Positions 1 through 64,000 of a DNA stretch of 64,000 nucleotides are shown here, one piece after another; within the stretch, counting starts at the first letter, position 1; each line of letters begins with the position of its first letter. The stretch covers positions 248,001-312,000 of the forward strand of contig OZ251247.1 of NCBI GenBank assembly GCA_965240325.2, given 5' to 3'. A program made the position numbers and the translations under genes. The DNA is from Rebecca billardiae RCC1528 (taxonomy: Eukaryota; Protista; Haptophyta). A model generated the notes under the pieces. That model was not told where the DNA came from and did not search any database. It was given only the letters and a program-made list of their open reading frames with translations.

Positions 1-409
1 GTTCCCCGGTGTCCTCGTCCAGCACCTGCTCCTGGCCGCACGTGTGCAGCCCGCCCTCCGCGTCCACAAACGCGCTGAAGCCACCGCCGGCAGCTGCGGC
101 GGCGGCGTGTGCGCGAGCCACTGCGAGCACGCCCTCGCGGGCGAAGAGCTCTTCTACCCACGTGTGCACGCCCGCGGGCAGCGTCCGCGGCAGCGCACGC
201 TCGTGCCCTCGCGCGCGCGCGCGCTCACGCAGCGCGCGCTCGACGGCCGAGCACCCGCCGGGCGGCGCGGCGTGGAAAAGGCGCGAGGTGGCGTTGGCGG
301 CGGCAAGCTCGCACGCGCGGTCGAGGTGGTCGACGATGCGCTGGATCAGCTCGGGCGGCAGGTCGGTCAGCCGCTTTGCTCCCGAGTGCGCGTCGTCGCC
401 GGATGCCAT
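1..409 (-). CDS. F-box/RCC1-repeat protein, short family member 1 (5' part; runs off left edge)
   Basis: ATG at 409 reads MASGDDAHSGAKRLTDLPPELIQRIVDHL...AAANATSRLF...FSAFVDAEGGLHTCG, collinear with the neighbouring paralogues; LxDLPxELxxxI is an F-box-like start. Confidence 0.85.
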   Translation of the reverse strand, partial: MASGDDAHSGAKRLTDLPPELIQRIVDHLDRACELAAANATSRLFHAAPPGGCSAVERALRERARARGHERALPRTLPAGVHTWVEELFAREGVLAVARAHAAAAAAGGGFSAFVDAEGGLHTCGQEQVLDEDTGE

Positions 410-462
410 CCCGCTTGGAGCCGGCCCGCCCGGCCGGCGTGGTGGCCGTATTGTAGTACTGT

Positions 463-543
463 GGCGGTGATGACAGTTGGCGGGCCGGTCAATCTCGCCT
501 GCCTACAGTCATGATCAGCTGTAGTGTGCGTCTCTTATTCTTA
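463..543 (-). promoter_or_regulatory. Conserved non-coding motif upstream of family genes (putative promoter or TE end)
   Basis: GTCAATCTCGCCTGCCT...GTGTGCGTCTCTTATTCTTA recurs at 52357-52400 and 53601-53643, and partly (inverted) at 29346-29365. Confidence 0.4.
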
Positions 544-875
544 ATAGTTACAAACTGTAGTCGGTCTAGCTAACGATGGCAGCCGTCGGCGCCTCTGCGG
601 GCGTCGCCCCACACTCTGGATCAGTGGATGACTCAGTCTCATGGCCGCGCAGCAATCGCGCATATGCCTCATGATCGCCGACATACTGTCAGTCGATCAG
701 ACAGTAGTCAGGAAGATGAATGTTTAGTGCAGCTAGTCCTTGCCCAATCCCATGGACGGCGTCCGGGCTGCCGGGCGTCGGCCGTGGCACAGCGTGCTGG
801 CAGCGTCTGCCTCTGGGCATACGCAGTCAGGAAAGGTGGCTGACAATCGAGGCGCACTGGCACGCGCGCGCGTAC

Positions 876-2345
876 TCAGCGCAGCGTGCCTGCAAGGGGC
901 GGCAGCTGCGCCACGCGCTCCAGCTCCGGCCGCATCTCCTCCGTGCCGTGCACGTCGAGGCCGAGCGCGGCCACCTCCATGCCGCACGCGTACACACTGC
1001 CGTCAGCGGTCACAAACAGCGCGTGGTAGGGGCTCATTGAGCACCCCAGCACGCGCTCACCTGCGAGGGCGTGCACCGGCTCGGGCAGACCAGACTCGTC
1101 GGGCCACCGGCCGAGCTGGCCGGAACCGTCCTCCCCGAACGTGTGCACGCTGCCGTCGGCGCCCAGCACCGCGCTGCTGTCATCACATGCACACGCGCGC
1201 ACCGCACGCACACCCGCCAGCGCCTCGATGCGCCCTGGCAGCAGGCGGCTGTAGGGGGCACCTTGGCCGAGCTGCAACGCGATCCCTGATCCGAACGAGT
1301 ACACCGCCCCCTCGCTGTCCACCACCAGGCTGTGCATGTGGCCAGCGCTCACGTGCACGGCGCACACGCCCCTGAGCTCCTCGATGCGCCTCGGCGTGGG
1401 GTGAGAATGCTGGTCGCCGTGGCCGAGACGGCCAAACTCGCCATGGCCGCACGAGTAGACAGCGCCGTGCGTAGACAGAAGCAGCGTATGCTTCTCGCCA
1501 GCTGCCATCCCGCCCACGCGCACGCCGTCCAGTGCCTCGATGCGCGTCGGCTCACACCGGTCCTCCTCGTCGCCGTGGCCGAGCTGGCCCCAGCTGTTGC
1601 GGCCCCAGCTGTACGCGCGCCCAGCGGCGGTGAGCGCGAGGCTGTGAACCCCGCCAGCAGCGATGCCCACGAGCATTTCGTCGGCCAGCGCGTGCAGACG
1701 GGCGAACGAGCGGCGCACGGCAGTGTCTCCCAGCCCGAGCTGGCCATACCCGTTGCTGCCGCAGCCGTACACGGCGCCGGCCTCGCTCAGCGCGAGCAGG
1801 TGCAAGCTGCCAGCGGCCACCGCGATCACACACACCGCGTTGAGGGAGGTGACGTGCGTCGGCACGCGCGCCACCTGCACGCCCGAATGACCAACAGCCA
1901 TGTGCGCTTGATACGCCCGCCCGTGCTCGTCCCGCACCTCCTCCTCGCCGCACGTGTGCAGCCCGCCCTCCGCGTCCACAAACGCGCTAAAGCAAGCGCC
2001 GCTGAGCCCACCCCTTCCGGAGACAACGACGGCGACGTGCGCACGCGAAACCTCAAGCACGCGCTCGCGCGCGAGAAGCTCCGCCGTCCAGGTACCCACG
2101 CCCGCCGGGAGCGTCGGTGGCAGCGCGCGATCGTGCCCGCGCGCGCGTGCGCGCTCGCGCAGCACGTGCTCGACCGCCGAGCGCTCGCCCGGCGCGCCGC
2201 GGAAGAGGCGCGAGGCGGCGTTGGCGGCGGCGAGGTCACGCGCGGTGCCGTCGATGTGGATGAGGATGCGCGCGACCAGCTCGGGCGGCAGGTCGGCCAG
2301 CCGCCGCGCTCCCGGCCTCGCCGCGGCGGCACGCCCGCGCGCCAT
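876..2345 (-). CDS. F-box/RCC1-repeat protein, short family member 2
   Basis: Intact ORF (track 876-2393, likely ATG 2345, MARGRAAA); LADLPPELVARIL F-box followed by about 7 RCC1 repeats (AAGxxHxLAL...YxWGxNxxGQLGHG). Confidence 0.9.
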   Translation of the reverse strand: MARGRAAAARPGARRLADLPPELVARILIHIDGTARDLAAANAASRLFRGAPGERSAVEHVLRERARARGHDRALPPTLPAGVGTWTAELLARERVLEVSRAHVAVVVSGRGGLSGACFSAFVDAEGGLHTCGEEEVRDEHGRAYQAHMAVGHSGVQVARVPTHVTSLNAVCVIAVAAGSLHLLALSEAGAVYGCGSNGYGQLGLGDTAVRRSFARLHALADEMLVGIAAGGVHSLALTAAGRAYSWGRNSWGQLGHGDEEDRCEPTRIEALDGVRVGGMAAGEKHTLLLSTHGAVYSCGHGEFGRLGHGDQHSHPTPRRIEELRGVCAVHVSAGHMHSLVVDSEGAVYSFGSGIALQLGQGAPYSRLLPGRIEALAGVRAVRACACDDSSAVLGADGSVHTFGEDGSGQLGRWPDESGLPEPVHALAGERVLGCSMSPYHALFVTADGSVYACGMEVAALGLDVHGTEEMRPELERVAQLPPLAGTLR

Positions 2346-2814: not shown

Positions 2815-4323
2815 TCAGCGGAGTGTGCTGGCAAGCCGTGGCAGCCGCTTCAGGCGCTGCGGCGTCGGGTCCGTTTCCCCGTCTTCCGTTTCGCCGTCGC
2901 CGCGGCCGAGCGCGGCTGACACCCTGCCGCACGAGTACGCGCTGCCGTCTGCACCCACAAACAGCGCGTGCGTTTCGCAGAGCGCGCACCAGAGCACGCG
3001 CACACAAGCGAGGGCGGTCACGCGCCTAGGCGGGGCAGACACGCCAGGAGATAGATCGAAGTAGTTCGCGTCACGCAGCTGGCCATTGCCGTTGTTACCG
3101 AACGTGTACACGCTGCCGTCCGCGCCCAGCACCGCGCTGCTGTCATAGCCACAGCTGGTGCGCACAGCGTTGACGCCAGCCAACGCCTCGATGCGCCCTG
3201 GCAGCGAGCGGTAGCCATGGGCGCCAACGCCAGGCGCATAGCCCAGCTGGTCATCCAACCCGGAACCGAACGACGACACGCCGCCCCCCACGTCCGCCAC
3301 CAGGCTGTGATCACTGCCTGCGCTCACGTGCACAGCGCGCACGCCCGCAAGCGCCTCGATGCGCCTCGGCGTGTGCTGATCCTGCTCGTCGCCGTGGCCG
3401 AGACGGCCTAAGTGGCCAGCGCCGCAAGAGTAGACGGCTCCACCGATCGAGAGCAACAGCGTGTAAGAATCCCCAGCCGCCACTCCGCCGATGCGCACGC
3501 CGTCAAGCGCCTCGATGCGCGTCGGCTCCCATCGCGCCTTCTCGTCGCCGTGGCCGAGCTGGCCGTAGTCGTTGTCGCCCCAGCTGTACGCACACCCAGC
3601 GGCGCTGAGCGCGAGGCTGTGGCTCGCGCCGGCCGAGATGCCCACGACACACGCAGCACGTAGGCGATCGATCAGCGCGAAGTACCGCCGGTCCTCCGTG
3701 TCCCCCAGCCCGAGCTGGCCGTAATCGTTGTAGCCGCAGCCGTACACCGTCCCGGCCTCGCTCAGCGCGAGCAGGTGGGACCCGCCGGCGGCCACCGCGA
3801 CCACGCGCACCGCGCTGAGGGAGGCGACGTGCGTCGGCACAAGCACACCCGGCCCATCGTGGTGGCCGATCGCCACGTGCGCTCGAGACTCGACCATCAG
3901 CTCCCCGTCCTCGTCCTCCTCCTCCACCACCTCCTCGCCGCACGTGTGCAGCCCGCCCTCCGCGTCCACAAACGCGCTGAAACCGTAGCCGGCCGCCACG
4001 GGAGGCGAGTGCGCGCGCGCGAGCACGATCACGCGCTCACGCGAGAACAGCTCCTCAGCCCAGGTGCCGACGCCCGCGGAGAGCGTCGACGGCAGCGCGC
4101 ACTCGTGGCCGCGTGCGCGCGCGCGCTCGCGTAGCGCGTGCTCGACTGGCGAGCACCCACCAGGCGGCGCGGCGTGGAAGAGGCGCGAGGCAGCGTTGGC
4201 CGCGGCGAGGTCACGTGCAGTGCCGTCGAGAAGGACGAGGATGCGCGCGACCAGGTCGTGCGGCAGGTCGGCCAGCCCTCGGCGCGCCGCGGCGGCCCGC
4301 CTGCGCGTCAGCATCGTCGTCAT
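2815..4323 (-). CDS. F-box/RCC1-repeat protein, short family member 3
   Basis: Intact ~500-aa ORF; LADLPHDLVARIL plus RCC1 repeats; ATG at 4323 or 4314. Confidence 0.9.
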   Translation of the reverse strand: MTTMLTRRRAAAARRGLADLPHDLVARILVLLDGTARDLAAANAASRLFHAAPPGGCSPVEHALRERARARGHECALPSTLSAGVGTWAEELFSRERVIVLARAHSPPVAAGYGFSAFVDAEGGLHTCGEEVVEEEDEDGELMVESRAHVAIGHHDGPGVLVPTHVASLSAVRVVAVAAGGSHLLALSEAGTVYGCGYNDYGQLGLGDTEDRRYFALIDRLRAACVVGISAGASHSLALSAAGCAYSWGDNDYGQLGHGDEKARWEPTRIEALDGVRIGGVAAGDSYTLLLSIGGAVYSCGAGHLGRLGHGDEQDQHTPRRIEALAGVRAVHVSAGSDHSLVADVGGGVSSFGSGLDDQLGYAPGVGAHGYRSLPGRIEALAGVNAVRTSCGYDSSAVLGADGSVYTFGNNGNGQLRDANYFDLSPGVSAPPRRVTALACVRVLWCALCETHALFVGADGSAYSCGRVSAALGRGDGETEDGETDPTPQRLKRLPRLASTLR

Positions 4324-6198: not shown

Positions 6199-7683
6199 TC
6201 AGCGCAGCGTGCCTGCAAGCGGCGGCAGCTGCACCACGCGCTCCAGCTCCGGCCGCATCTCCTCCGTGCCGTGCACGTCGAGGCCGAGCGCTGCCGACTG
6301 CTTGCCGCACGAGTACGCGTTGCCTTTTGCGGTCACAAAGAGCGCGTGCGACTCGCCGAGCGCGCACCAGAGCACGCGAGCACGGGCTAGGGCGCCCACG
6401 CGTTCTGGAACCTCTGACCCATTGGCGCCCTCGCCGAACTGGCCGTAGCTGTTGTCCCCGAAGGTGTGCACGCTGCCGTCCGCGCCCAGCACGGCGCTGC
6501 TGCAGTAGCCAGCAGACGCGCGCACTGCGCGCACACCAGTGAGCGTCTCGATGCGCCCTGGCAGCAAGCCCCAGTCGCGGGCGCCATGGCCGAGCTGCCC
6601 ACCAAATCCACAGCCGAAGGAGTGCACGCCGCCCACTGCGTCCACCACCAGGCTGTGCATGTGGTCCGCGCTCACGTGCAAGGCGCGCACGCCCGCGAGC
6701 GCCTCGATGTGCCTCGGCGTGTGCTGATCCTGCTCGTCGCCGTGGCCGAGACGGCCGTAGTAGCCATGGCCGCACGAGTAGACAGCACCATGCGTAGACA
6801 GAAGCAGCGTGTGCTCCTCGGCAGCGGCCATCCCGCCCACGCGCACAGCGTCCAGCGCCTCGATGCGCGTCGGCTCCCACCGGTCCTCTGTGTCGCCGTG
6901 GCCGAGCTGGCCGTGCTCGTTGTCGCCCCAGCTGTACGCGCACCCAGCGGCGGTGAGCGCGAGGGTGTGGGACCAGCCAGCGGCGATGCACACGGCGTGC
7001 GCACTCGCGGGCAGCCCGGCGAGAGCAAACGACCGCCGCTCCTCCCTGTCGCCGAGCCCGAGCTGGCCGGAGCCGTTGTAGCCGCAGCCGTACACGGCGC
7101 CGGCCTCGCTCAGCGCGAGCAGGTGGGACCAGCCAGCGGCTACAGAGCGCACGCGCACCGCGGCTAGGGAGGCGACGTGCGTCGGCACAAGCACCGCCCC
7201 CCGTGCGTCCGAGTGCCCGATGGCCCTGTGCACTTCAAACTCGCCCGTCAGCCCGGTCTCGTCGTCCAGCACCGCCTCCTCGCCGCACGTGTGCAACCCG
7301 CCCTCCGCGTCCACAAACGCGCTGAAGCCGTAGCCGGCCGCGACCGGAGGCGAGTGCGCGTGCGCGAGCACCATGACGCGCTCGTGCGCGAAGAGCTCCT
7401 CCGTCCACGTGCCGACGCCCGCGGGCAGCGTCGGCGGCAGCGCGCGATCGTGCCCGCGCGCGCGCGCGCGCTCGCGCAGCGCGTGTTCGACCGGCGAGCG
7501 CTCGCCCGGCGCGCCGCGGAAGAGGCGCGAGGCGGCGTTGGCGGCGGCGAGGTCACGTACGGTGCCGTCGAGGTGCACGAGGATGCGCGCGACCAGCTCG
7601 GGCGGCAGGTCGGCCAGCCGCCGCGCTCCCGGCCTCGCCGCGGCGGCACGCCCGCGCGCCATCGCCGGCATTGGCGGCATCAT
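6199..7683 (-). CDS. F-box/RCC1-repeat protein, short family member 4
   Basis: Intact ORF; ATG candidates 7683/7662; same architecture as neighbours. Confidence 0.9.
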   Translation of the reverse strand: MMPPMPAMARGRAAAARPGARRLADLPPELVARILVHLDGTVRDLAAANAASRLFRGAPGERSPVEHALRERARARGHDRALPPTLPAGVGTWTEELFAHERVMVLAHAHSPPVAAGYGFSAFVDAEGGLHTCGEEAVLDDETGLTGEFEVHRAIGHSDARGAVLVPTHVASLAAVRVRSVAAGWSHLLALSEAGAVYGCGYNGSGQLGLGDREERRSFALAGLPASAHAVCIAAGWSHTLALTAAGCAYSWGDNEHGQLGHGDTEDRWEPTRIEALDAVRVGGMAAAEEHTLLLSTHGAVYSCGHGYYGRLGHGDEQDQHTPRHIEALAGVRALHVSADHMHSLVVDAVGGVHSFGCGFGGQLGHGARDWGLLPGRIETLTGVRAVRASAGYCSSAVLGADGSVHTFGDNSYGQFGEGANGSEVPERVGALARARVLWCALGESHALFVTAKGNAYSCGKQSAALGLDVHGTEEMRPELERVVQLPPLAGTLR

Positions 7684-7976
7684 GCGGGACGGGCGCCGCG
7701 CCGGCGGCGCGAGCCCGGAAACTCCGCCTCCGATGGTCACTCCGGCTGCGCACTTTAACTTGTTAGCAATAGCTACTGCTATGTCGGATGAGAGCGGGGG
7801 CACGCGTCACGCGGCACGGCTGTGACACGCTGCTTGCTGCGATCTGAACTGGGCGGGCGCACAGGCACACAGCCGGCGTGTGGCACAGGCCGGTTGCAGT
7901 GACGTGCGCCGATTGCAGCGGCCCTGGCAGTCGTGCACACGATGCAGCGCGACAAATGGCCGGCACGCGCGCGTGC

Positions 7977-9437
7977 TCAGTCGAGCGTACCTGCAAGCGG
8001 CGGCAGCTGCGTCACGCGCTGGACCGGCACTAGCTCTGTCGGGCGTGGCTCGCGCCGCACGCCGAGGCCGAGCGCCGCCGACTGCTTGCCACATGCGTAC
8101 GCGTTGCCTTTTGCGGTCACAAACAGCGCGTGCGACTCGCCGAGCGCGCACCAGAGCACGCACTCATGGGCGAGGGCGCCCACGCGTTCGGGAACCTCTG
8201 GCCCACTGGCGCCCTCCTGGCCGTACGCGTTGTCCCCAAACGTGTGCACGCTGCCGTCCGCGCCCAGCACAGCGCTGCTGTAGTAGCCAGAGCACGCACG
8301 CACAGCGCGCACGCCCACCAGCGTCTCGATGCGCCCTGGCAGCGAGATGGGGTCGCCATGGCCGAGCGGCCCACCGGATCCACAGCCGAAGGAGTGCACG
8401 CCGCCCACCGCGTCCACCACCAGGCTGTGCATGTGGTCCGCGCTCACGTGCACGGCGCGCACGCCCGCGAGCGCCTCGATGCGCCTCGGCGTGTGCTGAT
8501 CCTGCTCGTCACCGTGGCCGAGACGGCCAAGCTGGCCATAACCGCACGAATACACGGCGCCGCCGTGCGCAGATAGCAGCAACGTGTGCTCAGCACCCGC
8601 CGCCACACCACCCACGCGCACACCGTCCAGCGCCTCGATGCGCGTCGGCTCCCACCGGTCCTCTGTGTCGCCGTGGCCGAGCTGGCCGTGCTCGTTGTCG
8701 CCCCAGCTGTACGCGCAGCCAGCGGCGGTGAGCGCGAGGGTGTGGGACCAGCCAGCAGCGATGCACACGGCGTGCTCACTCGCGGGCAGCCCGGCGAGAG
8801 CAAACGACCGCCGCTCCTCCCTGTCGCCGAGCCCGAGCTGGCCGGAGCCGTTGTAGCCGCAGCCGTACACGGCGCCGGCCTCGCTCAGCGCGAGCAGGTG
8901 GTGCACGCCTGCGGCCACAGAGCGCACGCGCACCGCGGCTAGGGAGGTGACGTGCGTCGGCACAAGCACCGCCCCCCGTGCGTCCGAGTGGCCGATGGCC
9001 TCGTGCACTTCAAACTCGCCCGTCGGCCAGGTCTCATCGTCCAGCGCCGCCTCCTCGCCGCACGTGTGCAGCCCGCCCTCCGCGTCCACAAACGCGCTGA
9101 AGCCGTAGCCGGCCGCGACCGGAGGCGAGTGCGCGTGCGCGAGCACCATGACGCGCTCGTGCGCGAGGAGCTCCTCCGTCCACGTGCCCACGCCCGCGGG
9201 CAGCGTCGGCGGCAGCGCGCGATCGTGCCCGCGCGCGCGCGCGCGCTCGCGCAGCGCGTGCTCGACCGGCGAGCGCTCGCCGGGCGCGCCGCGGAAGAGG
9301 CGCGAGGCGGCGTTGGCGGCGGCGAGGTCACGTACGGTGCCATCGAGGTGCACGAGGATGCGCGCGACCAGCTCGGGCGGCAGGTCGGCCAGCCGCCGCG
9401 CTCCCGGCCTCGCCGCGGCGGCAAGTTTGCGCGCCAT
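7977..9437 (-). CDS. F-box/RCC1-repeat protein, short family member 5
   Basis: Intact ORF; ATG 9437 (MARKLAAA); stop codon 1778 bp from that of member 4. Confidence 0.9.
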   Translation of the reverse strand: MARKLAAAARPGARRLADLPPELVARILVHLDGTVRDLAAANAASRLFRGAPGERSPVEHALRERARARGHDRALPPTLPAGVGTWTEELLAHERVMVLAHAHSPPVAAGYGFSAFVDAEGGLHTCGEEAALDDETWPTGEFEVHEAIGHSDARGAVLVPTHVTSLAAVRVRSVAAGVHHLLALSEAGAVYGCGYNGSGQLGLGDREERRSFALAGLPASEHAVCIAAGWSHTLALTAAGCAYSWGDNEHGQLGHGDTEDRWEPTRIEALDGVRVGGVAAGAEHTLLLSAHGGAVYSCGYGQLGRLGHGDEQDQHTPRRIEALAGVRAVHVSADHMHSLVVDAVGGVHSFGCGSGGPLGHGDPISLPGRIETLVGVRAVRACSGYYSSAVLGADGSVHTFGDNAYGQEGASGPEVPERVGALAHECVLWCALGESHALFVTAKGNAYACGKQSAALGLGVRREPRPTELVPVQRVTQLPPLAGTLD

Positions 9438-9755
9438 CGCGCCGGCGTTGGCGGCCTGGCGCAGCGCGGGCGGCGGGCGGCGAGCCCGGAAACTCCGGAT
9501 GGTCACTCCGGCTGCGCACTGTTGGCTGACTACTACTACTGCTAATCAGTGTCGTCGGATGAGAGCGGGGGCACGCGTCACGCGGCACGGCTGTGACACG
9601 CGCTGCTTGCTGCGATCTGAACTCGGCGGGCGCACAGTCACACAGCCGGAGTGTGACACAGGCCGGTTGCGTATGCAGTGACGTGCCGATTGCAGCGCTG
9701 CCCTGGCAGTCGTGCGTGCGATGCAGCGCGACCGATGGCCGGCACGCGCGCGTGC

Positions 9756-17261: not shown

Positions 17262-17309
<48 letters not shown>

Positions 17310-18361: not shown

Positions 18362-19491
18362 CAAGGGCGGTAAGGGCTGTCAACTCCCAGTGGCGCCGAG
18401 TGGCGGAGGTTGGTTGCCCCTCAACTCGTGCGGCCTCGCGGCGCAGCGGCTAAGTCTCCTGGGGCGCCGCCCAGGAGGGCGCGTGGGGTGCGCACGCCGC
18501 GGGCTCCTGCGGCCGCGGCAGCGGCCGCGGACACGGCGCGCGTGGTTGGTCGCATGCTAGACAGTATGTAGTACCCTCCCACGCCGCGCGCCGTGCTCGC
18601 CGGTGCCCTCGCCGTGCCTCAGGCCAGCCGCGCACGCGCGCCGCACCAATGGCCAGCCGTGGCCACGCGCCAGCCGCCGGCGCGCGCGCGGTGCGCGGTG
18701 CGGTCGGCGCGGGTCGGGCGCGCGCCCGGGGCGAGGCTTGTGTATGATGGGCGCGCGTCATGCCGCCTCGCGCCGCCGCACACGAGCTTGATCACGTTCC
18801 ACGCGGCTGCTGAAGGGTGCTCGTCGAGCATTCCTCGGCCATCAGAAATGAGCTTGGACAAGCGGCTGTGAGCGCACTGAGTGCGAGGAACGCGAGCACT
18901 TGGGGGCTCGCGTGCCATAGTATGATGCTAGTCGTGCTCATATCAGTGGTCTGCGCTTGTCTATCACGCGTCGCTGCCTTCCCATGATCGTCTCAACATG
19001 AGCATTTTCAAACATGGCAATGCACACTCGACAGCATGAGAACGCGTGCGCGCCGACCCATGCGGGCTCCAGCGCGGCGGCGCGAGGCGGCATGACGCGC
19101 GCCCAACATACACAAGCCTCGCCCCGGGCGCGCGCCCGACCCGCGCCGACCGCACCGCGCACCGCGCGCGCGCCGGCGGCTGGCGCGTGGCCACGGCTGG
19201 CCATTGGTGCGGCGCGCGTGCGCGGCTGGCCTGAGGCACGGCGAGGGCACCGGCGAGCACGGCGCGCGGCGTGGGAGGGTACTACATACTGTCTAGCATG
19301 CGACCAACCACGCGCGCCGTGTCCGCGGCCGCTGCCGCGGCCGCAGGAGCACGCGGCGTGCGCACCCCACGCGCCCTCCTGGGCGGCGCCCCAGGAGACT
19401 TAGCCGCTGCGCCGCGAGGCCGCACGAGTTGAGGGGCAACCAACCTCCGCCACTCGGCGCCACTGGGAGTTGACAGCCCTTACCGCCCTTG
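18362..19491. mobile_element. Foldback MITE (long TIRs, P-element-like CAAGG termini), copy 1
   Basis: About 420-bp near-perfect inverted arms (18362-18779 / 19074-19491), about 295-bp spacer, 7-bp TSD ACCAGGG (18355-18361, 19492-19498). Confidence 0.9.
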
Positions 19492-19653
19492 ACCAGGGGT
19501 TATGAACCTCCTGCATCCGGAGCAGTGGAAAGTGTAGGGGCGCCAATCGCGTGCGCCTTCGACTCGAGTCTCGTGGCGCGTGACCACACGGCGCGCGCGG
19601 TCGGCGGCGCGCCCGAGACCGTGTGCGCGGCGAGCGCCGAAGCCAGCGCACCG

Positions 19654-21661
19654 ATGAGCACGCCGATCGACGCCGACGCGCTGCCCCCCGCCGCCGGCGC
19701 CGCCGACGCCGCCATGCGCGTCGACGACGACGGCGCCGCCGCCGCCGCCGACGAGCGCAGCCGGCGCGTCACGGCGCTCGCGCCGCCGTGGTCGCGCTCG
19801 CGCGTGGCGTCGGCCGAGGCGTGCGAGGACGTGGAGATGGCGGAGCCGCCGCCGCCGCCGCTTCCAGAGCCCGCGCCGCTCACGCTCGGCGCGCTCCCAC
19901 CCGAGCTCCTCGCGCGCGTGTTTGGCTGCTTGGAGTCCGTCCATGACCTTAGCTACCTGGTCGCGACGGCGACGTGGCTGCGCGCGGCGGTGGACGCGGC
20001 GCTGCGCGAGCGGATCGCAGCGCGCGGGCACGCGGCGGTGCTCCCGCCGATGCCGCCGCCGCCACGCCGCCACGCCGCGCCCGAGCACCACCGCTCGCAC
20101 GCCGACGCGTCCGGCGCGCCGCGCGGCGCACGGGTCGCGACGCCTCTGCTGCTGGCGCTTGAGCGCGTGGCGACGGGCGCGGCGCGGCACTCGTGGTCGG
20201 TGGCGGCGGGCGGGCACGTCGCGCGCGGCTGCCTCGCCCCCTTCTCCGCCCTCGTCGCGGCGGACGGCTCGCTCTACGTCTGCGGCGACGAGCAGTACGT
20301 CGCGAAGCATTTCGCGCCCGCCGCGGCCGACGCGCCCGAGGGGCGGTGGGGCGGCGGCGGCGGTGGTGGCGGTGGGCACGCGGTGCACGGCGGGGCGCAC
20401 GGCACGCCGAGTGCGCATGCCGTGCCGATGGCTGTCGAGCCCTCAGCGCAGCAGCCCGCCGCCTCGTCGCCGCGCGGCGGCGGCGGCGGCGGCCGCGGCG
20501 GCCGCGGCCTTGGCGGCGGAGCGCGCGTCGGCGCCGGCAGCGCGTCCGTGCACCCCGAGCTGCCGCACCCGCCGCCCGCGGCCGCGCCCGCGGGCAGCCA
20601 CTCGCGGCTGCAGGCGAGTCCTGCCACCGCCGTCGCCGCGGCGCGCGCGAGGCTGCTGCGCGCGCGCGACGGGCCGGCGCAGCCTTCGCCCCACCACTTG
20701 TGGCAGCGGCAGCCGCAGCCGCAGCAGCCGCAGCAGCCGCAGCCGTGGCAGCAGCCGCAGCCGTGGCAGCAGCCGCAGCCGTGGCAGCCGGTCCAGCAGC
20801 AGCACCATAGCCTGCCGCTGCGCGGGTCGGCGCCGGAGGGCCCCGAGGGCGCGGACGGCGGCGCGGGCGCACCCGCGCACGCGCCACACGGGCACTTCAG
20901 CGCGCAGCAGCTGTGGCAGCAGCAGCAGCAGGCGCAGCTTCAGGCACACGACCCGTTCGCGCTCGGGCACGGCGCGCTCGTGCCCGCGCGGCACGGCGCG
21001 CTGCGCGCCGTGCGCTTCCTCTCCGTCTCGGCGGGGCGCTCGCACCTGCTCGCGCTGAGCGACGTGGGCGCCGTGTACGCGTGCGGCGAGAACGCGCTCG
21101 GCCAGCTCGGGCTGGGGGACACGGCGCGGCGGGACGTGCCGACGCAGGTGGGCGCGCTGGCGGGGCCCGAAGTGATCGCGTGCGTGGCTGCGGGCGCGGG
21201 CGGGCACAGCCTCGCGCTCTCGGCGCGCGGCTGCGTGTACAGCTGGGGCGGCGGCGGCTCGGGCCAGCTCGGCCACGGCGACCGCTCGTCCGCGCGCGCG
21301 CCGCGCCGCATCGAAGGGCTCGCCCGCTCCGCCGTCATCGTCGGCGTCACCGCCGGCGGTTTCCACAGCCTCGCGCTCACCGCGGGCGGCACTGTCTTGG
21401 GCTGGGGCTCTGCGCACGACGGGCGCGTGGGCGTGGGCGCGGCCGCGCTCGGCGCCGCGGCGGGCGCGAGCGGCGGCGACGCCCGCTGTCTCACCGCGCC
21501 CACGCCAGTCCCGGCCTTCCGCGCCGCGTCCGCGCCCATCGTGCAGCTCGCCGCGGGCGAGGCGCACAGCCTCGCCGTCGCGGCGGACGGCAGCGCGTAC
21601 GCGTGCGGCACTGGGCTGCAGGGGCTGGTGCTCGGGCCGTGCCTCGCGCCAGAGATCGAGA

Positions 21662-21692
<31 letters not shown>

Positions 21693-22551
21693 GGGCGCGG
21701 GCGGCGGCGCGGCCTGCGACACCGCGGGCGGCGGCGGTGCCGGCGGTGCCATCGGCGGCGGCCGCGGCGGCGGCGGCCCGGGCAGCCACGCCGCGGGCCG
21801 CGCCGTGTCCTCCGTGTTTGGCGGCCGGGGCGCCCATCGCGCGAGCCACGGCGGCGCGGGCGGCGGCGCCGCCGCCCCGGCCGCGGCCGTCGGCGGCGGC
21901 TCGGTGCGCGGTGCAGTGCTCACGCCTCGGCGCGTGCTCGGCAGTGTCGCGCACTCGCGCGTGGCGCGCGCCGTCGCGGGCTCGTCTGTGTCGCTGCTGA
22001 TTGACGAGGCGGGGCGCGTGCACGCGTTCGGCCCGCGCGACGAGACGGCGCTGAGCCGCGCGACGGCGTGCGCGCAGCCCGCCGCGCCCTCGCCGAGCGG
22101 CGCGGCGCACGGCCTCGCGCCGATGCGCATGGCGCCGGGCGTCGCGTTCAGTGCGACAGACGCCGCGGTGGGCTGGGTGCACGCCGTCGTCGCTGGACGC
22201 GCCGCGCCCGAGCCGCCGCAGCCGGCGGCGCACGCGCACGCGCACGCGCCGGGCCAGGCGAGCGCGTGCGCGCTCGCCGCCGCGGAGTGGGCCGCCCTGC
22301 ACGCCGGCCCACACGGCGGCGGCGGCGGCGGCCATGCTGGCGGCGGCCATGCTGGCGGTGTTCTCTTCAGCTGGGGTGTCGCCTCCGGCGCGCTCGGCCA
22401 CGGCGAGCCGATGCGCAGCTCGCGCGCGACGGTCGGCTGGCGGCCGCGCGAGGACGGCGCGCTGCGGCCGCGGCCGCCGTGCGCCGTGCTCGGCGCGCCG
22501 CCCGTGCGGCTCTCGGCGGCGGGGCCGCCCAGCCCGCGCGCGGGGACGTAG
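19654..22551 (+). CDS. Long F-box/RCC1-repeat protein with Gln/Gly/Pro-rich insertions, copy A
   Basis: LGALPPELLARVF F-box; RERIAARGH linker homologous to the short family; RCC1 repeats (YACGENALGQLGLG, YSWGGGGSGQLGHG). ATG 19654 aligns with the start of copy B. Confidence 0.85.
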
Positions 22552-43671: not shown

Positions 43672-43702
<31 letters not shown>

Positions 43703-44594
43703 GGGCGCGGGCGGCGGCGCGGCCTGCGACACCGCGGGCGGCGGCGGTGCCGGCGGTGCCATCGGCGGCGGCCGCGGCGGCGGCGGCCCGGGCAGCCACG
43801 CCGCGGGCCGCGCCGTGGCCTCCGTGTTTGGCGGCCGGGGCGCCCATCGCGCGAGCCACGGCGGCGCGGGCGGCGGCGCCGCCGCCCCGGCCGCGGCCGT
43901 CGGCGGCGGCTCGGTGCGCGGTGCAGTGCTCACGCCTCGGCGCGTGCTCGGCAGTGTCGCGCACTCGCGCGTGGCGCGCGCCGTCGCGGGCTCGTCTGTG
44001 TCGCTGCTGATTGACGAGGCGGGGCGCGTGCACGCGTTCGGCCCGCGCGACGACACGGTGCTGAGCCGCGCGACGGCGTGCGCGCAGCCCGCCGCGCCCT
44101 CGCCGAGCGGCGCGGCGCACGGCCTCGCGCCGATGCGCATGGCGCCGGGCGTCGCGCTCAGCACGACAGACGCCGCGGTGGGCTGGGTGCACGCCGTCGT
44201 CGCTGGACGCGCCGCGCCCGAGCCGCCGCAGCTGGCGGCGCACGCGCACGCGCACGCGCACGCGCACGCGCACGCGCCGGGGCAGGCGAGCGCGTGCGCG
44301 CTCGCCGCCGCGGAGTGGGCCGCCCTGCACGCCGGCCCGCACGGCGGCGGCGGCGGCGGCCATGCTGGCGGCGGCCATGCTGGCGGCGGCCATGCTGGCG
44401 GTGTTCTCTTCAGCTGGGGTGTCGCCTCCGGCGCGCTCGGCCACGGCGAGCCGATGCGCAGCTCGCGCGCGACGGTCGGCTGGCGGCCGCGCGAGGACGG
44501 CGCGCTGCGGCCGCGGCCGCCGTGCGCCGTCCTCGGCGCGCCGCCCGTGCGGCTCTCGGCGGCGGGGCCGCCCAGCCCGCGCGCGGGGACGTAG
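41706..44594 (+). CDS. Long F-box/RCC1-repeat protein, copy B
   Basis: 962-aa intact ORF; RCC1 half nearly identical to 19654-22551. Confidence 0.85.
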
Positions 44595-48385: not shown

Positions 48386-50103
48386 TAGGGGGGCCAAACC
48401 GCCCATTTAAAAATGAAAAGCAAAGTCGCGTCGCATTTTCGCTCCGCCCTCGGCCTTTTACGGTGGCGCGGAGCCTTTTTCTCGGACCCCGCTCGAAAAT
48501 CGAGCTTCACGCCTTCGGACGCTCAGAGCTCGGTTCCGCTCCAGCGCGAGCGGCCGGAGGCAGTGGACCGCCGCGCGCTCGCGACCTTTGAGACGCCGAG
48601 ATGGTCTCGGGTGCGCGCGCGCGTGACGCTGGTGGGCGCTACTGACCCGTGCCTTTGCGCCACCAGCGGCTCACCACCCGCTTCTTGGCCATCTCGCGCC
48701 GTGCGCGGCGCGCGTCGGCCGGCTTGAATTGGCGCGCTGCGTGCGCCCGTCACGCTACCGCACGGTGTGGCTCATGATCAACTCGCACAGTTGAGATCGA
48801 TGCTCGCACCAAGTGCCCATGTATGTATGTGGATGCCCAGCTCGCCTAACCTGCCCTGCTGCGCCGGAATCGCCGTCAGCAGACCGGCGCGAGCTCGCGC
48901 GCAACACCTCCGCGGAGCTCGCAACTGTCATGTTCCGCTTGTAGGGCCCGTGTTTGCACCTGCCGTGGCACTTGCGATGGTCAGTACGTTGGGTATGGGT
49001 CACGTGTGCCCTCTGATGGCGTCTGGGCGCCTCCCATTCGCCTCTCAGGACGTCGCGGACGTGCTCGCAGGCAGCGGTTGGCTCATTCGACAGGTCCGAC
49101 GTGCACTCGACCGTGCCTGCAAGCGCGCCCCTGTGACGCTCATGCCTGCAGAAGCAGATGCAGATGGGCCCTCATGCACCCTGGTGCGCCCAAGACCGGC
49201 GGGAGCGTCAGAGACCGTCTCAATCTTGACACCTTGCACACGCCGGCGCTTGCCGTTGGGCTCCGCGCAGCCAGCCAGGAGCGCCGAACAGCGCCGGATC
49301 AGCCTCTGTAGGCCGAATATCCGCCCCTAAGCCCAGAAATAGCGCGGAACAGGGTAGTGCGTACCTATATGGACCAATCCCATCCAGCCTGGTTTGGTGC
49401 AGACACGCCAGCCACCGCCTGGAGCAGACGTTTGCTGCCGAATCGCATGCTCGGCACTGTGCCGCACTGCGACGACGACAGATTTGACCTGCCTCGTAGG
49501 TCTCGGCCAGGGAGCGGTGACGGTTGGCTCGCGTCACTTTAAACCTTGACTATGACCGAGAGCACTCCCGGGCTAAGGACGTGGGGCCGGTGCTTTGGGT
49601 CTACTATGTCTGCAATACGCCGTACGCGTGGCCGTATACACAGTCTGAAAACGTATCTCGCAGCTCGAGATCAGACGAGGCTGTATTCATCAGCATGGCG
49701 CCTATATACACAGTGGGTATGTAACGATCGGTGGCTTCTAGGAAACTACATATTTGACAGCCTGCCAGTACACAGCCTATATCGCATGTTGGGACCTGCT
49801 GCTGCTGGGGACTCAGAACGATCTCGCTGACAGATGCTCTATCAAAGTGAGGTCGACATGGTCTATATGTCACATATAGGACGACCGTTACATACCGTTT
49901 CCAATAAGTTCAGGCTCATTCTAATAAGTAAATATGCTAGCCGTTACGCCCTATATTCAGGGTATGTGCACCTGATTTTTTTACATGGCCGGACCAGACC
50001 CCTCCAGAGGGCAAATGATCCAGCCCGAAATCAGCTCTAAACACTCGCTAGGACCCGCGCTCGTGGCCGTCAGTAACGCTACAGTGCCACTTTGGCCCCC
50101 CTA
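48386..50103 (+). mobile_element. 1.72-kb TAGGGGGGCCAAA element, copy 2
   Basis: TIRs intact; nearly identical to 56139-57864. Confidence 0.92.
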
Positions 50104-53590: not shown

Positions 53591-53710
53591 TTAGGCGGGC
53601 GTCAATCTCGCCTGCCTGAGCTGTGTGCGTCTCTTATTCTTATAGATATTATTATTTCTACTACTTGCGGCGGATGCGCTGCGACGTCGCCTTGTCGAGC
53701 TACTGAGCGA

Positions 53711-55297
53711 CTATGGCACAGCCGGCGCCGGCGCTGCGGCTGCGCGGAGGCAGGCAGCATCGCTGCCAGTGGGCAGCACACCGTCACCGGGCGCATGCAC
53801 TCGGCCCGCTGAGCCGATGGCACGGTGGCTCTCGAGTTGAAGCCCGTCGATGCGCGCAGGGGCGGCCACGGGGGCGCCGGCCGGCCTGACTGCTGCGCTC
53901 AGCCCGAGGCCGAGCGCCGCCGAATGCACGCCGCACGCAAAGACCGCGCCGTCAGCAGTGGTGTACAGCGAGTGCAAGTTGCCAAACGCGCAGCCGCTCA
54001 CCCGCGCGTGCGCAAGTGAGTGCACAGGCAGGGGGGCGGACGCCTCGTCCGAGGTGTGCCCGCGCCCGAGCTGGCCATGCTCGCCAAACCCGCACGTGTG
54101 CACGTCACCGTCCGCGCCCAGCACCGCGCTGCAGTAGTTGCCAGCACACGCGCGCACAGCCGTCACACCTGCCAGCGCGGCGATGCGCTTGGGCGATGGC
54201 TGAACAGCAGAGCCTGCGCTGTAGCCAAGCTGCCCGCGACTCCCGTCCCCGAACGAGTGCACGCCACCCTCCTTGTCCACCACCAGGCTGTGCCGTAGGC
54301 CCGCGCTCACATGCACGGCGCGCACGCCCGCAAGCGCCTCGATGCGCCTCGGCGTGCGCTGATGCTGATGGTCGCCGTGGCCGAGCTGGCCAAACTGGCC
54401 ACGCCCGCACGAGTAGGCGGCCCCGCAAGCCGAAGACAGCAGCGTGTGAGATTGCCCAGCTGCAACGCCGCCCACACGCACCCCGTCCAGCGCCTCGATG
54501 CGCGTCGGCTCCCACCTGTCCTTCTTGTCGCCGTGTCCGAGCTGGCCCCAGACGTTCCAGCCCCAGCTGTACGCACAGCCAGCGGCGCTGAGCGCGAGGC
54601 TGTGCAGAGCGCCAGCAGAGAGGCCCACCACCACGACGTCGGCCAGCGCGGTGATCGGAACGAACTCGCGTCGATCGGGCTCACGCCGCGCCTCCGCGTC
54701 CCCCAGCCCGAGCTGGCCGAAGCTGTTGTTGCCGCAGCCGTACACGGCGCCGGCCTCGCTCAGCGCAAGCAGGTGGCCACGGCCTGCGGCCACAGAGCGC
54801 ACGCGCAGCGTGGACAGCGAGGGTACGCGGGTCGGCACGCGTACGGTCGACACACGCGAGTGACCGGTAGCCACGTGCGCTACATACTCGCCCGTCGGCT
54901 CCGCGGTATCCTCGTCCCCCACCTCCTCCTCGCCGCACGTGTGCAGCCCGCCCTCCGCGTCCACAAACGCGCTGAAGCGGAGGCCGGCCGCAACTGGAAG
55001 CGCGTGCGCCTGCACCAGCACGAGCAAGCGCTCGCGTGCGAAGAGCTCCTCCGTCCAGGTGCACGCGCCCGCGGGGAGCGTAGGCGGTAGCGCGCGATCG
55101 TGCCCGCGCGCGTGTGCGCGCTCGCGCAGCGCGTGCTCAACCGGCGAGCGCTCTCCGAGCAGGCCGCGGAAGAGGCGCGAGGCGGCGTTCAAGCTGGCGA
55201 GGTCCGACGGCGCTTCGACGTACGCGAGAACGCGCGCGATCAGCTCCGGCGGCAGGATGTCTCCCAGCGCATGCGGCGTCTCGCAGCCGTCGCTCAT
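53711..55297 (-). CDS. F-box/RCC1-repeat protein, short family member 8
   Basis: ATG 55297 (MSDGCETPHALGDILPPELIARVL); intact RCC1 repeats. Confidence 0.9.
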   Translation of the reverse strand: MSDGCETPHALGDILPPELIARVLAYVEAPSDLASLNAASRLFRGLLGERSPVEHALRERAHARGHDRALPPTLPAGACTWTEELFARERLLVLVQAHALPVAAGLRFSAFVDAEGGLHTCGEEEVGDEDTAEPTGEYVAHVATGHSRVSTVRVPTRVPSLSTLRVRSVAAGRGHLLALSEAGAVYGCGNNSFGQLGLGDAEARREPDRREFVPITALADVVVVGLSAGALHSLALSAAGCAYSWGWNVWGQLGHGDKKDRWEPTRIEALDGVRVGGVAAGQSHTLLSSACGAAYSCGRGQFGQLGHGDHQHQRTPRRIEALAGVRAVHVSAGLRHSLVVDKEGGVHSFGDGSRGQLGYSAGSAVQPSPKRIAALAGVTAVRACAGNYCSAVLGADGDVHTCGFGEHGQLGRGHTSDEASAPLPVHSLAHARVSGCAFGNLHSLYTTADGAVFACGVHSAALGLGLSAAVRPAGAPVAAPARIDGLQLESHRAIGSAGRVHAPGDGVLPTGSDAACLRAAAAPAPAVP

Positions 55298-57864: not shown

Positions 57865-58099
57865 AGTCCAGTCGTTGGGGTACCATACGTTCTGCCCGAG
57901 TGGTGAATAATCTTTTGCCGAAAAAGAAAAAGGGATGATGAATGAATGTATATATACCATTCAGGCGGGCATTGCCGGGTTGCACCCGGCAATGCTGCAT
58001 TCACCCCGGTCCTACCGGAATGCAGGGCTCGCCCCGCTGGCCGCTCCGTGACCGTCAGCGCCGCGCGCCACACAGGCCACCACGACTTCATTATCATCA

Positions 58100-61093: not shown

Positions 61094-61112
61094 GAGGAAC
61101 GAGCCGGTGGAG

Positions 61113-62197
61113 CAAGGGCGGTCAGGGCTGCTAACTCCCAGTGCCGCGAGTGAGAGGAGGTTGGGTATCGATCAACTCGTGCGCCCTCGCGGCGCAGCGG
61201 CTATGTCTCCTGGGGCGCCGCCCTGGAGGGCGCGTGGGGTGCGCACGCCGCGTGCTCCTGCGCCCGCGGCAGCGGGCGCGGACACGGCGCGCGTGGTTGG
61301 TCGCATGCTAGACAGCACGTAGTACCCCCCCACGCCGCGCGCCGCGCTCGCCGGCGCCCTCGCCGTGCCTCAGGCCAGCCCGCGCCCGCGCGCCGCACCA
61401 AGATCCAGTTGTAGCCACGCGCCAGCCGCCGGCGCGCGCGCGGTGTGCGGTGCGGTCGGCGCGGGGCGGGCGCGCGCCCGGGGCGAGGCTCGTGTACGAT
61501 CGGCGCGCGCCATGCCGCCACGCGTCGCCGAACACGAGCTTGATCACGTTCCACGCGGCTGCTGATGGGTGCTCGTCGAGCATTCCTCAGCCATCAGAAA
61601 TGAGCTTGGACAAGCGGCTGTGAGCGCGTCAGTGCGAGGAATGCGACGACTTGGGGACTCTTGCGCCATCATAGGATGCCAATCGTTCACACATCAGTGG
61701 TCTGCGCATGTCTATCGCGCTTCGCTGCCTTCCCGTGATCGTCTCAACATGAGCATTTTCAAACTTGGCCAATGCACACTCGACAGCATGAAAACGCGTG
61801 CGCCGACCCATGCGGGCGCCAGCGTGGCGGCGCGTGGCGGCATGGCGCGCGCCGATCGTACACGAGCCTCGCCCCGGGCGCGCGCCCGCCCCGCGCCGAC
61901 CGCACCGCGCACCGCGCGCGCGCTGGCGGCTGGCGCGTGGCCACGGCTGGCTCTTGGTGCGGCGCGCGGGCGCGGGCTGGCCTGAGGCACGGCGAGGGCG
62001 CCGGCGAGCGCGGCGCGCGGCGTGGGAGGGCACTACGTGCTGTCTAGCATGCGACCAACCACGCGCGCCGTGTCCGCGCCCGCTGCCGCGGGCGCAGGAG
62101 CACGCGGCGTGCGCACCCCACGCGCCCTCCAGGGCGGCGCCCCAGGAGATCGATACCCAACCTCCTCTCACCGGCGCGGCAGAGTTCGCAGCCCTTG
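61113..62197. mobile_element. Foldback MITE, copy 2 (diverged)
   Basis: CAAGGGC...GCCCTTG termini; arms and spacer homologous to 18362-19491; flanks GGTGGAG / CGAGGAG (degenerate 7-bp TSD). Confidence 0.85.
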
Positions 62198-62908
62198 CGA
62201 GGAGGGATCCGACACTCCGGACCCTTGATCCGACCTTTGAATCATCATCATCACTACATCTCTTGCTGTTCCCGGGGACGTAGCTGGGGGAGTTGACTGA
62301 CAGATTGCACGAAAAACCGTTGGCCCCAATTGGGATCTGACTAAACTGTATTCCTCGGGATACCTATTGGAAGGCCATCAACCTTGTAAGAATCACCGGA
62401 CTTCGCGTGTCCTACCGGAAAACTCGCTCCGCTCGCATGCTTGTTCTTACAGAACAACCAATGCGAGCGGGGCTCGCGATTAATTTATTCATTTATTCGT
62501 CGTAGTCGGCCACTGGCCGATGAACGGGCAAAAGTGGGCATCCTGTGGCCGACGGGTTGGCCGACGCCCGTCGAGGCTTGATTCGCACACAGCCGCCTAT
62601 GCGTCCGATCTTCTGGAGAGCATATTCGCCGGCACGTAGTGCGCGGGCATTGATGGCGGTGCATCGCGTGGCGATATATATATTGATGATGCTGCGATGC
62701 GTCCGCGCAGACACCGAGTAGCTGCGGCAGCGCTACGGCAGCACCGAGCAGGCGCGGCGGCTCGGCGGTCGGCCCGCCACCGTCAGTCGTCACCGTGGGC
62801 GGCGGCGCCACTCGGCCGCACTCGGTGCGGCAGTGGGCAGCACTCATCACCGCCGCCCGTGCGGCTGGCACCCAGACGCAGATCACCGCCGACGAGCCGA
62901 TGACACGT

Positions 62909-64000
62909 TCAGCGTTCGCTCGCGAGTTGGAGCCCGTCGATGCGAGCAGGGACGGCCCAGATATAAGCACCGGCTGGCGTGGCTGGCGGCATTGCTAGGC
63001 TCAGCCCGAGGCCGAGTGCCGCCGAGTGCGCCCCGCACGCGTACACGCTGCCGCACGCGGTGGCAAACAGCGCGTGCTGAAAGCTCAGGGCGCAGTGCAC
63101 CACGCGAGCTTGGGCTAGCGCACCGACACGCATGGGCAGCAGCGATTCGTCAAGGCCATCGTGTCCCAGCTGGCCGTCTTCGTTGTCCCCGAACGTGTGC
63201 ACGCTGCCGTCCGCGCCCAGCACCGCGCTGCAGCGGAGGCCAGCGCACGCGCGCACGATGCGCACAGCGGCGAGGGCGTCAACCCGCCTCGGCGTGAGCT
63301 GGTCGTCTGTGTCTCCGTGCCCGAGCCTGCCCTCCCCACCCGCCCCAAACGAGTGCACCCCACCCGCTGCGTCCACCACCAGGCTGTGCAACCAGCCCGC
63401 GCTCACGTTCACGGCGCGCACGCCTTCGAGCGCCTCGATGCGCCTCGGCGTGCGCTGATCCTGTTGGTTGCCGTGGCCGAGCTGGCCGTAGTAGCCCCAG
63501 CCGCACGAGTAGACGGCGCCTTGCGCAGCGAGCAGCAGCGTGTGCGCCTCGCCAGCTGCCATCCCCCCCACGCGCACGCCGTCCAGGGCCTCGATGCGCG
63601 TCGGCTCCCACCGCTTCTGAGTGTCGCCGTGGCCGAGCTGGCAGTAGTAGTTGTTGCCCCAGCTGTACGCGCAGCCGGCGGCGGTGAGCGCGAGGCTGTG
63701 GTAGTCGCCAGCGGCGATGCCCATCACCACGACGCCAGCGAGCGCCACGATCGGCTCAAACTCGCGCCGCTCCTCCGCGTCCCCCAGCCCGAGCTGGCCG
63801 GAGCCGTTGTAGCCGCAGCCGTACACGGCGCCGGCCTCGCTCAGCGCGAGCAGGTGGGCACGGCCAGCGGCCACAGCGGCTACGCGCACCGCGCTGAGCG
63901 AAGGCACGCAAGTCTGCACGCGTACTGCCCGCACGCCCGCGTGACCGATGACGAAGGGCGTTCGAGCCTCGCCCGTCCACACCCCGTCCTCCTCGTCATC
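62909..64000 (-). CDS. F-box/RCC1-repeat protein, short family member 9 (3' part; 5' end beyond window)
   Basis: Open frame with six RCC1 repeats; C-terminus PARIDGLQL shared with member 8. Confidence 0.88.
   Translation of the reverse strand, partial: DDEEDGVWTGEARTPFVIGHAGVRAVRVQTCVPSLSAVRVAAVAAGRAHLLALSEAGAVYGCGYNGSGQLGLGDAEERREFEPIVALAGVVVMGIAAGDYHSLALTAAGCAYSWGNNYYCQLGHGDTQKRWEPTRIEALDGVRVGGMAAGEAHTLLLAAQGAVYSCGWGYYGQLGHGNQQDQRTPRRIEALEGVRAVNVSAGWLHSLVVDAAGGVHSFGAGGEGRLGHGDTDDQLTPRRVDALAAVRIVRACAGLRCSAVLGADGSVHTFGDNEDGQLGHDGLDESLLPMRVGALAQARVVHCALSFQHALFATACGSVYACGAHSAALGLGLSLAMPPATPAGAYIWAVPARIDGLQLASER

Follow-up and report, generated by a model that had tools for sequence, protein, structure and literature searches.

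A tandem F-box/RCC1 gene family with hypervariable propeller loops in Rebecca billardiae: a putative germline repertoire of ubiquitin-ligase recognition modules

Here we describe a family of tandemly amplified genes in a 64,000-nucleotide stretch of the genome of the haptophyte Rebecca billardiae RCC1528 (assembly GCA_965240325.2, contig OZ251247.1, positions 248,001 to 312,000; hereafter the window), whose members combine an F-box-like motif, a helical linker and an RCC1 propeller. Pairwise rates and codon site models support the conclusion that some 30-35 loop residues of the propeller are under positive or diversifying selection, while the framework is under purifying selection, with about 60% of codons at a nonsynonymous to synonymous rate ratio (omega) near 0.06. 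Taken together we consider it fairly probable (roughly 60%) that the family is a germline repertoire of putative recognition modules of SCF (Skp1-Cul1-F-box) ubiquitin ligases. In such a system the proteins would dock on Skp1/Cul1 through the F-box, every copy would use its variable face to bind a protein target of its own, and the array would act as a germline repertoire of modules that mark their targets for ubiquitination. The copies swap segments by gene conversion or recombination, which leaves blocks of the framework DNA near-identical without levelling the differences among the loop codons. Viral proteins or those of other parasites, non-self determinants and endogenous proteins are all candidate targets.

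The gene array

An earlier note on this DNA, made from the letters alone, had listed nine intronless paralogues with an almost invariant framework. Using motif scans and six-frame translation we located all nine with the framework motifs quoted there, each on the minus strand and each as one unbroken open reading frame (ORF); two long divergent members (J and K, described further below) come on top of this count. Seven of the nine (A-G) are complete and intronless, and the other two (H and I) are truncated by the ends of the window, in which the G+C content ranges from 59 to 81%. The copies are as follows.

1..409, minus strand: copy I, N-terminal part only (F-box-like motif, linker and start of blade 1), remainder beyond the window start
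876..2345, minus strand: copy A, complete intronless coding sequence, 489 amino acids (F-box-like motif, helical linker, seven-blade RCC1 propeller)
2815..4323, minus strand: copy B, complete coding sequence, 502 amino acids
6199..7662, minus strand: copy C, complete coding sequence, 487 amino acids, chosen for the structural model
7977..9437, minus strand: copy D, complete coding sequence, 486 amino acids
9756..11180, minus strand: copy E, complete coding sequence, 474 amino acids
50564..52087, minus strand: copy F, complete coding sequence, 507 amino acids from the ATG at 52087
53711..55297, minus strand: copy G, complete coding sequence, 528 amino acids, with a longer C-terminal tail
62909..64000, minus strand: copy H, propeller and C-terminus, N-terminus lost at the window end

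Copies C, D and E are consecutive, with a period of about 1.78 kb. D is the nearest relative of C (92% nucleotide identity), and nevertheless its loop codons are different. The frame of copy I begins with the ATG at 409, contains ...LTDLPPELIQRIV...FSAFVDAEGGLHTCG and is still open at base 1.

Variation is concentrated in two loops of each blade

We set 35 loop sites beforehand from the blade register, being the two variable residues of A-A-G-x-x-H and the three of G-x-N-x-x-G in each of seven blades. The mean column entropy is 1.88 bits at these sites against 0.63 bits at the other 322 propeller positions (Mann-Whitney p=2e-15), and between copies the loop sites are 11-31% identical whereas the framework is 68-79% identical. 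This agrees with the earlier description of an almost invariant framework with changes focused on two motifs per blade, and all XX and X-N-XX strings that had been listed for it were recovered in the alignment (blades 2, 3, 4 and 5). The loops had further been described as forming a variable face of Tyr, Trp and charged residues. Their composition is indeed enriched in Tyr (12% against 1.7%) and Trp (4% against 1%), and also in Ser, Asp and Glu.

In the structural model of copy C the loop sites fall in the S1-S2 and S3-S4 loops of each blade, except for the second motif in blade 1, which is atypical. In an antiparallel meander such alternate loops share one side of the propeller. In a sequence alignment the two loop motifs match W233/R234, W285/R286 and W337/R338 of UVR8, and W198, W250 and W302 together with the pair of residues that follows the next glycine. 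Of these, the tryptophans of GWRHT and the arginines R286/R338 are located at the dimer interface of UVR8 (PMC4501546); both motifs align to dimer-interface residues, as the proposed equivalence to the binding face of UVR8 had it. The loop sites probably share one face of the propeller, a placement based on the UVR8 alignment and the strand topology and not on measured geometry.

The same positions are likewise the most variable ones among 30 distant homologues (entropy 3.30 against 1.69). A subgroup of four metagenome homologues (P0023, P0031, P0045 and P0072) has loops that are 63-80% identical, versus 58-67% for the frame, and probably represents an orthologue group of conserved specificity inside the family. 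Since the loops are conserved in this subgroup, the positions can be constrained, as a binding site would be. The loop residues retained by the four proteins include MY/xTL, EY/YGL and xC/YGS.

Loop codons are under diversifying selection

Pairwise rates were computed with the Nei-Gojobori method for 28 pairs of copies. The nonsynonymous divergence (dN) of the loops ranges from 0.21 to 1.63 and the synonymous divergence (dS) of the framework from 0.17 to 0.57, and the ratio of the two (1.3-4.3) exceeds 1 in all 28 pairs; within the framework, dN/dS is 0.27-0.57. Site models were fitted to 339 gap-free codons of eight copies with our own likelihood code (GY94 with F3x4 frequencies). The log-likelihood rises from -6057.4 for the one-ratio model M0 (omega 0.30) to -5760.5 for M1a and -5738.6 for M2a, the last of which assigns 60% of sites to omega 0.06, 33% to omega 1 and 7.3% to omega 7.3. 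M2a is clearly preferred over M1a (likelihood-ratio statistic 43.7, p=3e-10). Eleven sites have a posterior above 0.9, seven of which are among the 30 analysable loop codons defined a priori (odds ratio 23, p=5e-6). A site-model analysis had been proposed in the earlier note as a check, and comes out in favour of diversifying selection at the loops. Because recombination inflates such tests, the comparison was rerun after dividing the codons into three consecutive partitions with a separate tree for each; the statistics are 23.2, 36.0 and 8.5 (p=9e-6, 1.5e-8 and 0.014, respectively).

The copies are strongly biased in codon usage (G+C at third codon positions 0.82-0.95), and non-coding spacers provide a baseline.

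7663..7976, minus strand: spacer separating D from C, homologous to the one that separates E from D (9438-9755), non-coding divergence baseline (K=0.17)

Divergence (K) is 0.17 between the C/D and D/E spacers and 0.43-0.55 between the A/B spacer and the others. The framework dS is close to these values for C-D (0.17) and in the A/B comparisons, and is higher for D-E (0.28), which indicates that dS is not deflated by codon bias. For D-E, the loop dN of 0.73 stands against the spacer K of 0.17. Four-fold sites one codon away from loop codons differ in 23.9% of cases, compared to 24.9-34.6% farther off; taken over distances of one to three codons the fraction is 0.24-0.25, compared to 0.26-0.35 beyond. 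Where two loop codons specify the same residue, they differ in 26% of cases, which equals the background level. Given that silent change is unraised both beside and within the loops, there is no regional mutational hotspot. The high loop dS obtained with Nei-Gojobori (near dN) was rejected as an artefact of path counting on the basis of the direct counts of same-residue codons and flanking four-fold sites. Targeted hypermutation by a diversity-generating system was likewise rejected as silent change beside the loops is not raised; a template repeat was not searched for.

Segments are exchanged between copies

Tree topologies differ among the three partitions. In approximately unbiased (AU) tests the tree of the middle partition is rejected for the first partition (p=0.001) as well as for the last (p=1e-4), and the tree of the last partition is rejected for the first (p=0.006). 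This rejection of a single tree implies that segments were exchanged between copies. A permutation test on the longest identical runs was dropped in favour of the AU tests as it is confounded by blocks conserved in every copy. Loop words with identical codons also cross the subfamilies: Y-N-G-S of blade 2 is found in C, D and H, and R-A in E and H.

Homogenisation of the framework is patchy. Overall, the codons differ in 22.8% of same-residue pairs. This silent difference is only 1.6-8% in blocks such as FSAFVDAEGGLHTCGEE, ALSEAGAVYGCG and AYSWG-x-N-xx-GQLGHG, against about 52% in other 15-codon windows. In blade 3, three hypervariable codons are flanked by DNA-identical sequence in all eight copies. 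For the final Gly of GQLG, 7 of 8 copies use GGG in blade 2, and 7 of 8 use GGC in blade 3; as such blade-specific choices are held in nearly all copies, codon preference is not the cause. The simplest reading is that frequent short-tract gene conversion homogenises the framework while selection preserves or renews the diversity of the loops.

A block of about 42 nucleotides in blade 1, AGCGCGTTTGTGGAC...TGCGGC (codons AGC GCG TTT GTG GAC GCG GAG GGC GGG CTG CAC ACG TGC GGC), is shared by copies A-G and I (for example 7300-7345 in C) and is nearly free of silent change: one copy carries a silent change and one a replaced codon, whereas silent sites elsewhere differ at about 23-50%. The block could be an anchor for gene conversion or an element acting at the nucleotide level, such as a shared small-RNA target.

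Propeller and N-terminal module

Every copy gives Pfam matches to RCC1, RCC1_2 and WD40_RLD (E 1e-62 to 1e-82), with scores for PF25390, PF00415 and PF13540 that far exceed the cut-offs. An AlphaFold2 model of copy C, built from a 37-sequence alignment, has a mean predicted local distance difference test (pLDDT) of 92 and a predicted template modelling score of 0.91, and consists of five helices followed by seven four-stranded blades. With seven RCC1 repeats of about 51-52 residues and a seven-blade fold the domain qualifies as an RCC1-like domain (RLD). Best among the solved structures found with Foldseek are UVR8 chains (template modelling (TM) score by target 0.89-0.93, root mean square deviation about 1.8 A, 29% identity), and behind them come the RLDs of HERC1/2, RPGR and RCC1; E values for UVR8, HERC2, RPGR and RCC1 are 1e-24 to 1e-40. 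The structural similarity to RCC1 itself is lower than that to UVR8 (TM by target 0.71-0.75, 22% identity). A single conserved GTPase partner, as in the Ran exchange-factor role of RCC1, would be hard to reconcile with a would-be contact face that is hypervariable. A cluster search in the AlphaFold Database returned generic RCC1/UVR8 folds only.

The first 100 or so residues hold an F-box-like motif (L-x-D-L-P-x-E-L-x-x-R-I-L ... A-S-R-L-F), after which comes a conserved helical linker (V-E-x-A-L-R-x-R-A-x-x-R-G-H ... W-x-x-E-L). The F-box that the earlier note placed here is borne out at the level of the family profile. When a profile of 31 N-termini was run against the Protein Data Bank (PDB), all nine matches at E<10 were F-box proteins, with FBXO31 as the best (E=2.5e-3) and further matches to Legionella AnkB, FBXW7, FBXL5, cyclin F, FBXL2, FBXO3 and FBXO4. 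PF12937 is matched by 26 of the 31 N-termini (best E 3e-8) and PF00646 by 12. The residues L5, L8 and P9 are retained in at least 90% of these 31 diverse homologues; they include the Leu-Pro pair, which is the hallmark of the F-box. A model of the N-terminal module (pLDDT 90) shows helices at 10-19 and 24-33, then one short turn of helix (35-37) and a pair of helices in the linker. It comes closest to the F-box and linker of Fbw7 in Skp1 complexes (TM 0.54-0.57), with Fbs1 and FBXO31 as other matches, none of them statistically significant. F-box homology of the N-terminus is well supported, though at the profile level only, and the N-termini would be expected from their sequence to bind Skp1. 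A Pfam search of the copies gave F-box-like and RCC1 families only, with no NACHT, NB-ARC or other death-effector domain.

Other members, surroundings and distribution

Two further ORFs on the opposite strand carry the same module.

19489..22551, plus strand: long divergent member J, same F-box-like/linker module and RCC1 blades, with Gly/Gln/Pro low-complexity inserts
41706..44594, plus strand: long divergent member K, segmental duplicate of J at 22 kb distance, with Gly/Gln/Pro low-complexity inserts

The 3' halves of J and K are nearly identical and the 5' halves are 87-91% identical. The ratio of nonsynonymous to synonymous differences (pN/pS) between them is 0.70, pointing to weak constraint, and both may be decaying.

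Two sequences of telomere-like type were seen. In copy F, the S3-S4 loop of blade 5 (about 50975-51010, minus strand) contains an in-frame degenerate (CCCTAA)n repeat, gaCCCTAACCCTAgCCCTAACCaCCCTAACCCTAACC, which encodes DPNPSPNHPNPN and leaves the frame open. A perfect interstitial (TTAGGG)4 lies at 12725-12748, within a region of 81% G+C (11.8-17.7 kb) that has long ORFs on both strands, none matching Pfam.

The genes had been placed in a cluster rich in transposable elements. Interspersed repeats are present, as listed here.

48386..50103, strand not assigned: interspersed repeat of about 1.7 kb adjoining copy F, recurring at 56139-57866 by copy G and inverted at 29446-31048
23632-24260 and 27488-28383: direct repeats resembling long terminal repeats, two blocks with 99-100% identity
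18356-19497 and 61206-62149: fold-back elements, two copies, with arms of 324-432 nucleotides

Between 48386-50103 and 56139-57866 there are four matches of 270-300 nucleotides at 99-100%. These repeats give the description partial support. By Pfam no transposon domain (transposase or reverse transcriptase) was found in the 20 other ORFs of at least 200 amino acids, and these ORFs (including 39506-40513, minus strand) have no Pfam match at all at E<=0.01, except for one sub-threshold DUF3645.

The nearest protein in a database of 5.8 billion sequences (P0001) is merely 50% identical and sits on genomic contigs of 67-70% G+C with unrelated adjoining genes. Among 1.84 billion representatives, the profile of the N-terminal module reaches 270 clusters (50% identity) at E<=1e-10, and full-length family members measure about 470-540 amino acids. 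The ESM Atlas contains haptophyte clusters with RCC1 and F-box families, auto-named 'putative F-box domain-containing protein', and a feature search there scored chordate FBXO24 at 0.94. From these module clusters and the haptophyte clusters of the Atlas it follows that the F-box/RCC1 architecture is widespread in haptophyte-type algae and relatives. To judge from sequence comparison, the family appears to be expanded in this genome, with relatives in other haptophyte-type algae. No poly(A) tails were found on the homologue contigs L003 and L004.

Comparison with known systems

The idea of a selected repertoire of F-box receptors is not new, and has precedents in the F-box expansions of nematodes and plants, in the WD40 propellers of fungal NOD-like receptors (NLRs) and in FBXO24. 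According to Thomas 2006 as cited in PMC8120010, nematode and plant F-box families show positive selection in the substrate-binding domain and were proposed as a recognition repertoire. Their recognition domain is FTH, FBA, leucine-rich repeat or Kelch, whereas here it is an RCC1 propeller; moreover, the selected sites of the present family are strictly blade-periodic on one face and its host is a haptophyte-type alga. In the HNWD NLRs of Podospora (het-d, het-e, het-r) the likeness is in the evolutionary pattern only. According to PMC11761791, which cites Paoletti 2007, the WD40 repeats of het-d and het-e are kept alike by concerted evolution, with a few hypervariable codons on the interaction surface. 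These proteins have WD40 rather than RCC1 repeats, carry NACHT and HET effectors in place of an F-box, and shuffle repeats within a gene, whereas here shuffling occurs among paralogous genes.

Mammalian FBXO24 has the same two-domain architecture of F-box and RCC1 (a comparison by features, not by orthology). It binds SKP1, CUL1 and RBX1 and mediates ubiquitination of a substrate (PMC10932545), but it is a conserved single-copy gene without a hypervariable face. UVR8 (PDB 4dnw, 6xzm) provides the closest solved propeller, with GWRHT and G-W-G interface residues aligned to the hypervariable sites; it differs in having no F-box and in not being a multigene repertoire. A role as UVR8-type UV-B photoreceptor was tried and rejected: the aligned positions read SL, GS, WS, VH, RA and the like, and the Trp triad of adjacent blades (W233, W285, W337), the W-R pair and the Arg286/Arg338 pattern are absent from every copy. 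Fbw7 and beta-TrCP (PDB 2ovr, 7t1y) share the order of F-box, alpha-helical linker and beta-propeller; theirs are WD40 propellers with a conserved degron pocket, and the structural match to the present module is not statistically significant. Searches of full-text literature gave no description of an F-box/RCC1 family in haptophytes or of a hypervariable RCC1 propeller under diversifying selection.

Weighing the alternatives

A number of observations weigh against a selected repertoire of SCF recognition modules. The site models are based on only eight sequences and on self-written code. Silent divergence varies strongly along the framework, with 2% to 52% of same-residue codon pairs differing, and, if conversion resets the framework, a ratio of loop dN to framework dS above 1 means that loop diversity is preserved, not necessarily that it changes faster; diversity kept against homogenisation and faster substitution are, however, both forms of diversifying selection. 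Long ORFs are weak evidence of intactness in a genome of 70% G+C. Taken singly, the copies in the window score 16-20 bits on PF12937, under the Pfam cut-off of 24.3 bits, and no Foldseek match of the N-terminal model reaches significance (E at least 0.78, the top ones 0.8-1.8, with a probability of at most 0.6). Run X1 (share 0.06; the search was not restricted to RNA) speaks neither for nor against expression, as it gives short contigs that are mostly 90-95% alike, with one identical piece of 210 nucleotides; these fragments probably stem from paralogues or from a relative.

It might be argued that no adaptive repertoire exists at all, and that relaxed constraint on exposed loops combined with concerted evolution of the rest ('genomic drift'), or a mutational hotspot confined to the loops, produced the pattern. 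The variability of the same loop positions in distant homologues would fit this, as would the weak constraint on J and K, and lowered silent divergence in blocks of the framework inflates the ratios of loop to frame. Against it, a site class with omega of about 7 is required in all three partitions, the loop dN of D-E exceeds the divergence of the spacers, and silent sites flanking the loops are unraised. Gene conversion alone would homogenise the loops along with their identical flanks, the skew of loop composition to Tyr and Trp is not random, and one subgroup of homologues has kept its loops; we therefore give this explanation very little credence. The proteins might also be binding modules outside SCF ligases, with the F-box-like helices serving as a structural cap or as a site for another partner, and with a role as scaffold, inhibitor or sensor. 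The sub-threshold Pfam scores of single copies and the non-significant structural match speak for this, and RCC1-like domains occur without ubiquitin ligases in many settings (UVR8, RPGR, RCC1). Yet the N-terminal profile reaches F-box proteins exclusively in the PDB, and the conservation of L5, L8 and P9 and the broad match to PF12937 point the same way, which makes such a role improbable in our view.

Other possibilities concern what the propellers recognise. The earlier note proposed an intracellular system against viruses and parasites, in which the propellers send pathogen or transposon proteins to the proteasome and the loops take part in an arms race. Such a system is consistent with positive selection on a single binding face, with the abundance of Tyr, Trp and Ser in the loops, as in antibody binding sites, and with the tandem amplification and shuffling of the copies; for F-box families of nematodes a like argument has been made (Thomas 2006, cited in PMC8120010). 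Allorecognition or rapidly changing endogenous targets fit the same signature, however, and no recognisable domain of a transposon or viral protein adjoins the genes in the Pfam search of the 20 other ORFs, so that we regard this function as a rather doubtful option. A more specific version is unlikely: a continually reshuffled germline repertoire with framework and loops akin to the complementarity-determining regions ('CDR') of antibodies on an RCC1 propeller, wired by the F-box to ubiquitin, in which DNA-identical blocks would anchor the exchange of loop cassettes and which would serve intracellular innate defence against the large DNA viruses, or other parasites, by which these algae are infected. 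Recognition of self and non-self or of mating partners would have its models in the S-locus F-box arrays of plants and in the Podospora WD40 propellers of het-d and het-e, whose allele specificity is set by hypervariable propeller sites. It is favoured by the likeness of the sequence pattern to that of the fungal HNWD repeats (PMC11761791); in the present family the framework is homogenised in patches and AU tests reject a single tree. The copies are without NACHT or another death-effector domain, and we deem this role highly unlikely.

Conclusions

Loops and framework are clearly delimited, with some 35 loop positions placed on a model whose pLDDT is 92, which makes a repertoire of recognition modules on the RCC1 propeller directly testable, and the propeller may also be of use as a scaffold for engineered binders. 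If the proposed function is true, the family would join a propeller design to the F-box effector logic of nematodes and plants. It would also be a further independent case of a constant propeller with a hypervariable face and concerted evolution, a combination otherwise known from fungal NLRs. For the organisms themselves, it would mean that a diversified recognition family exists in a major group of marine phytoplankton in which intracellular antiviral defence is poorly understood.

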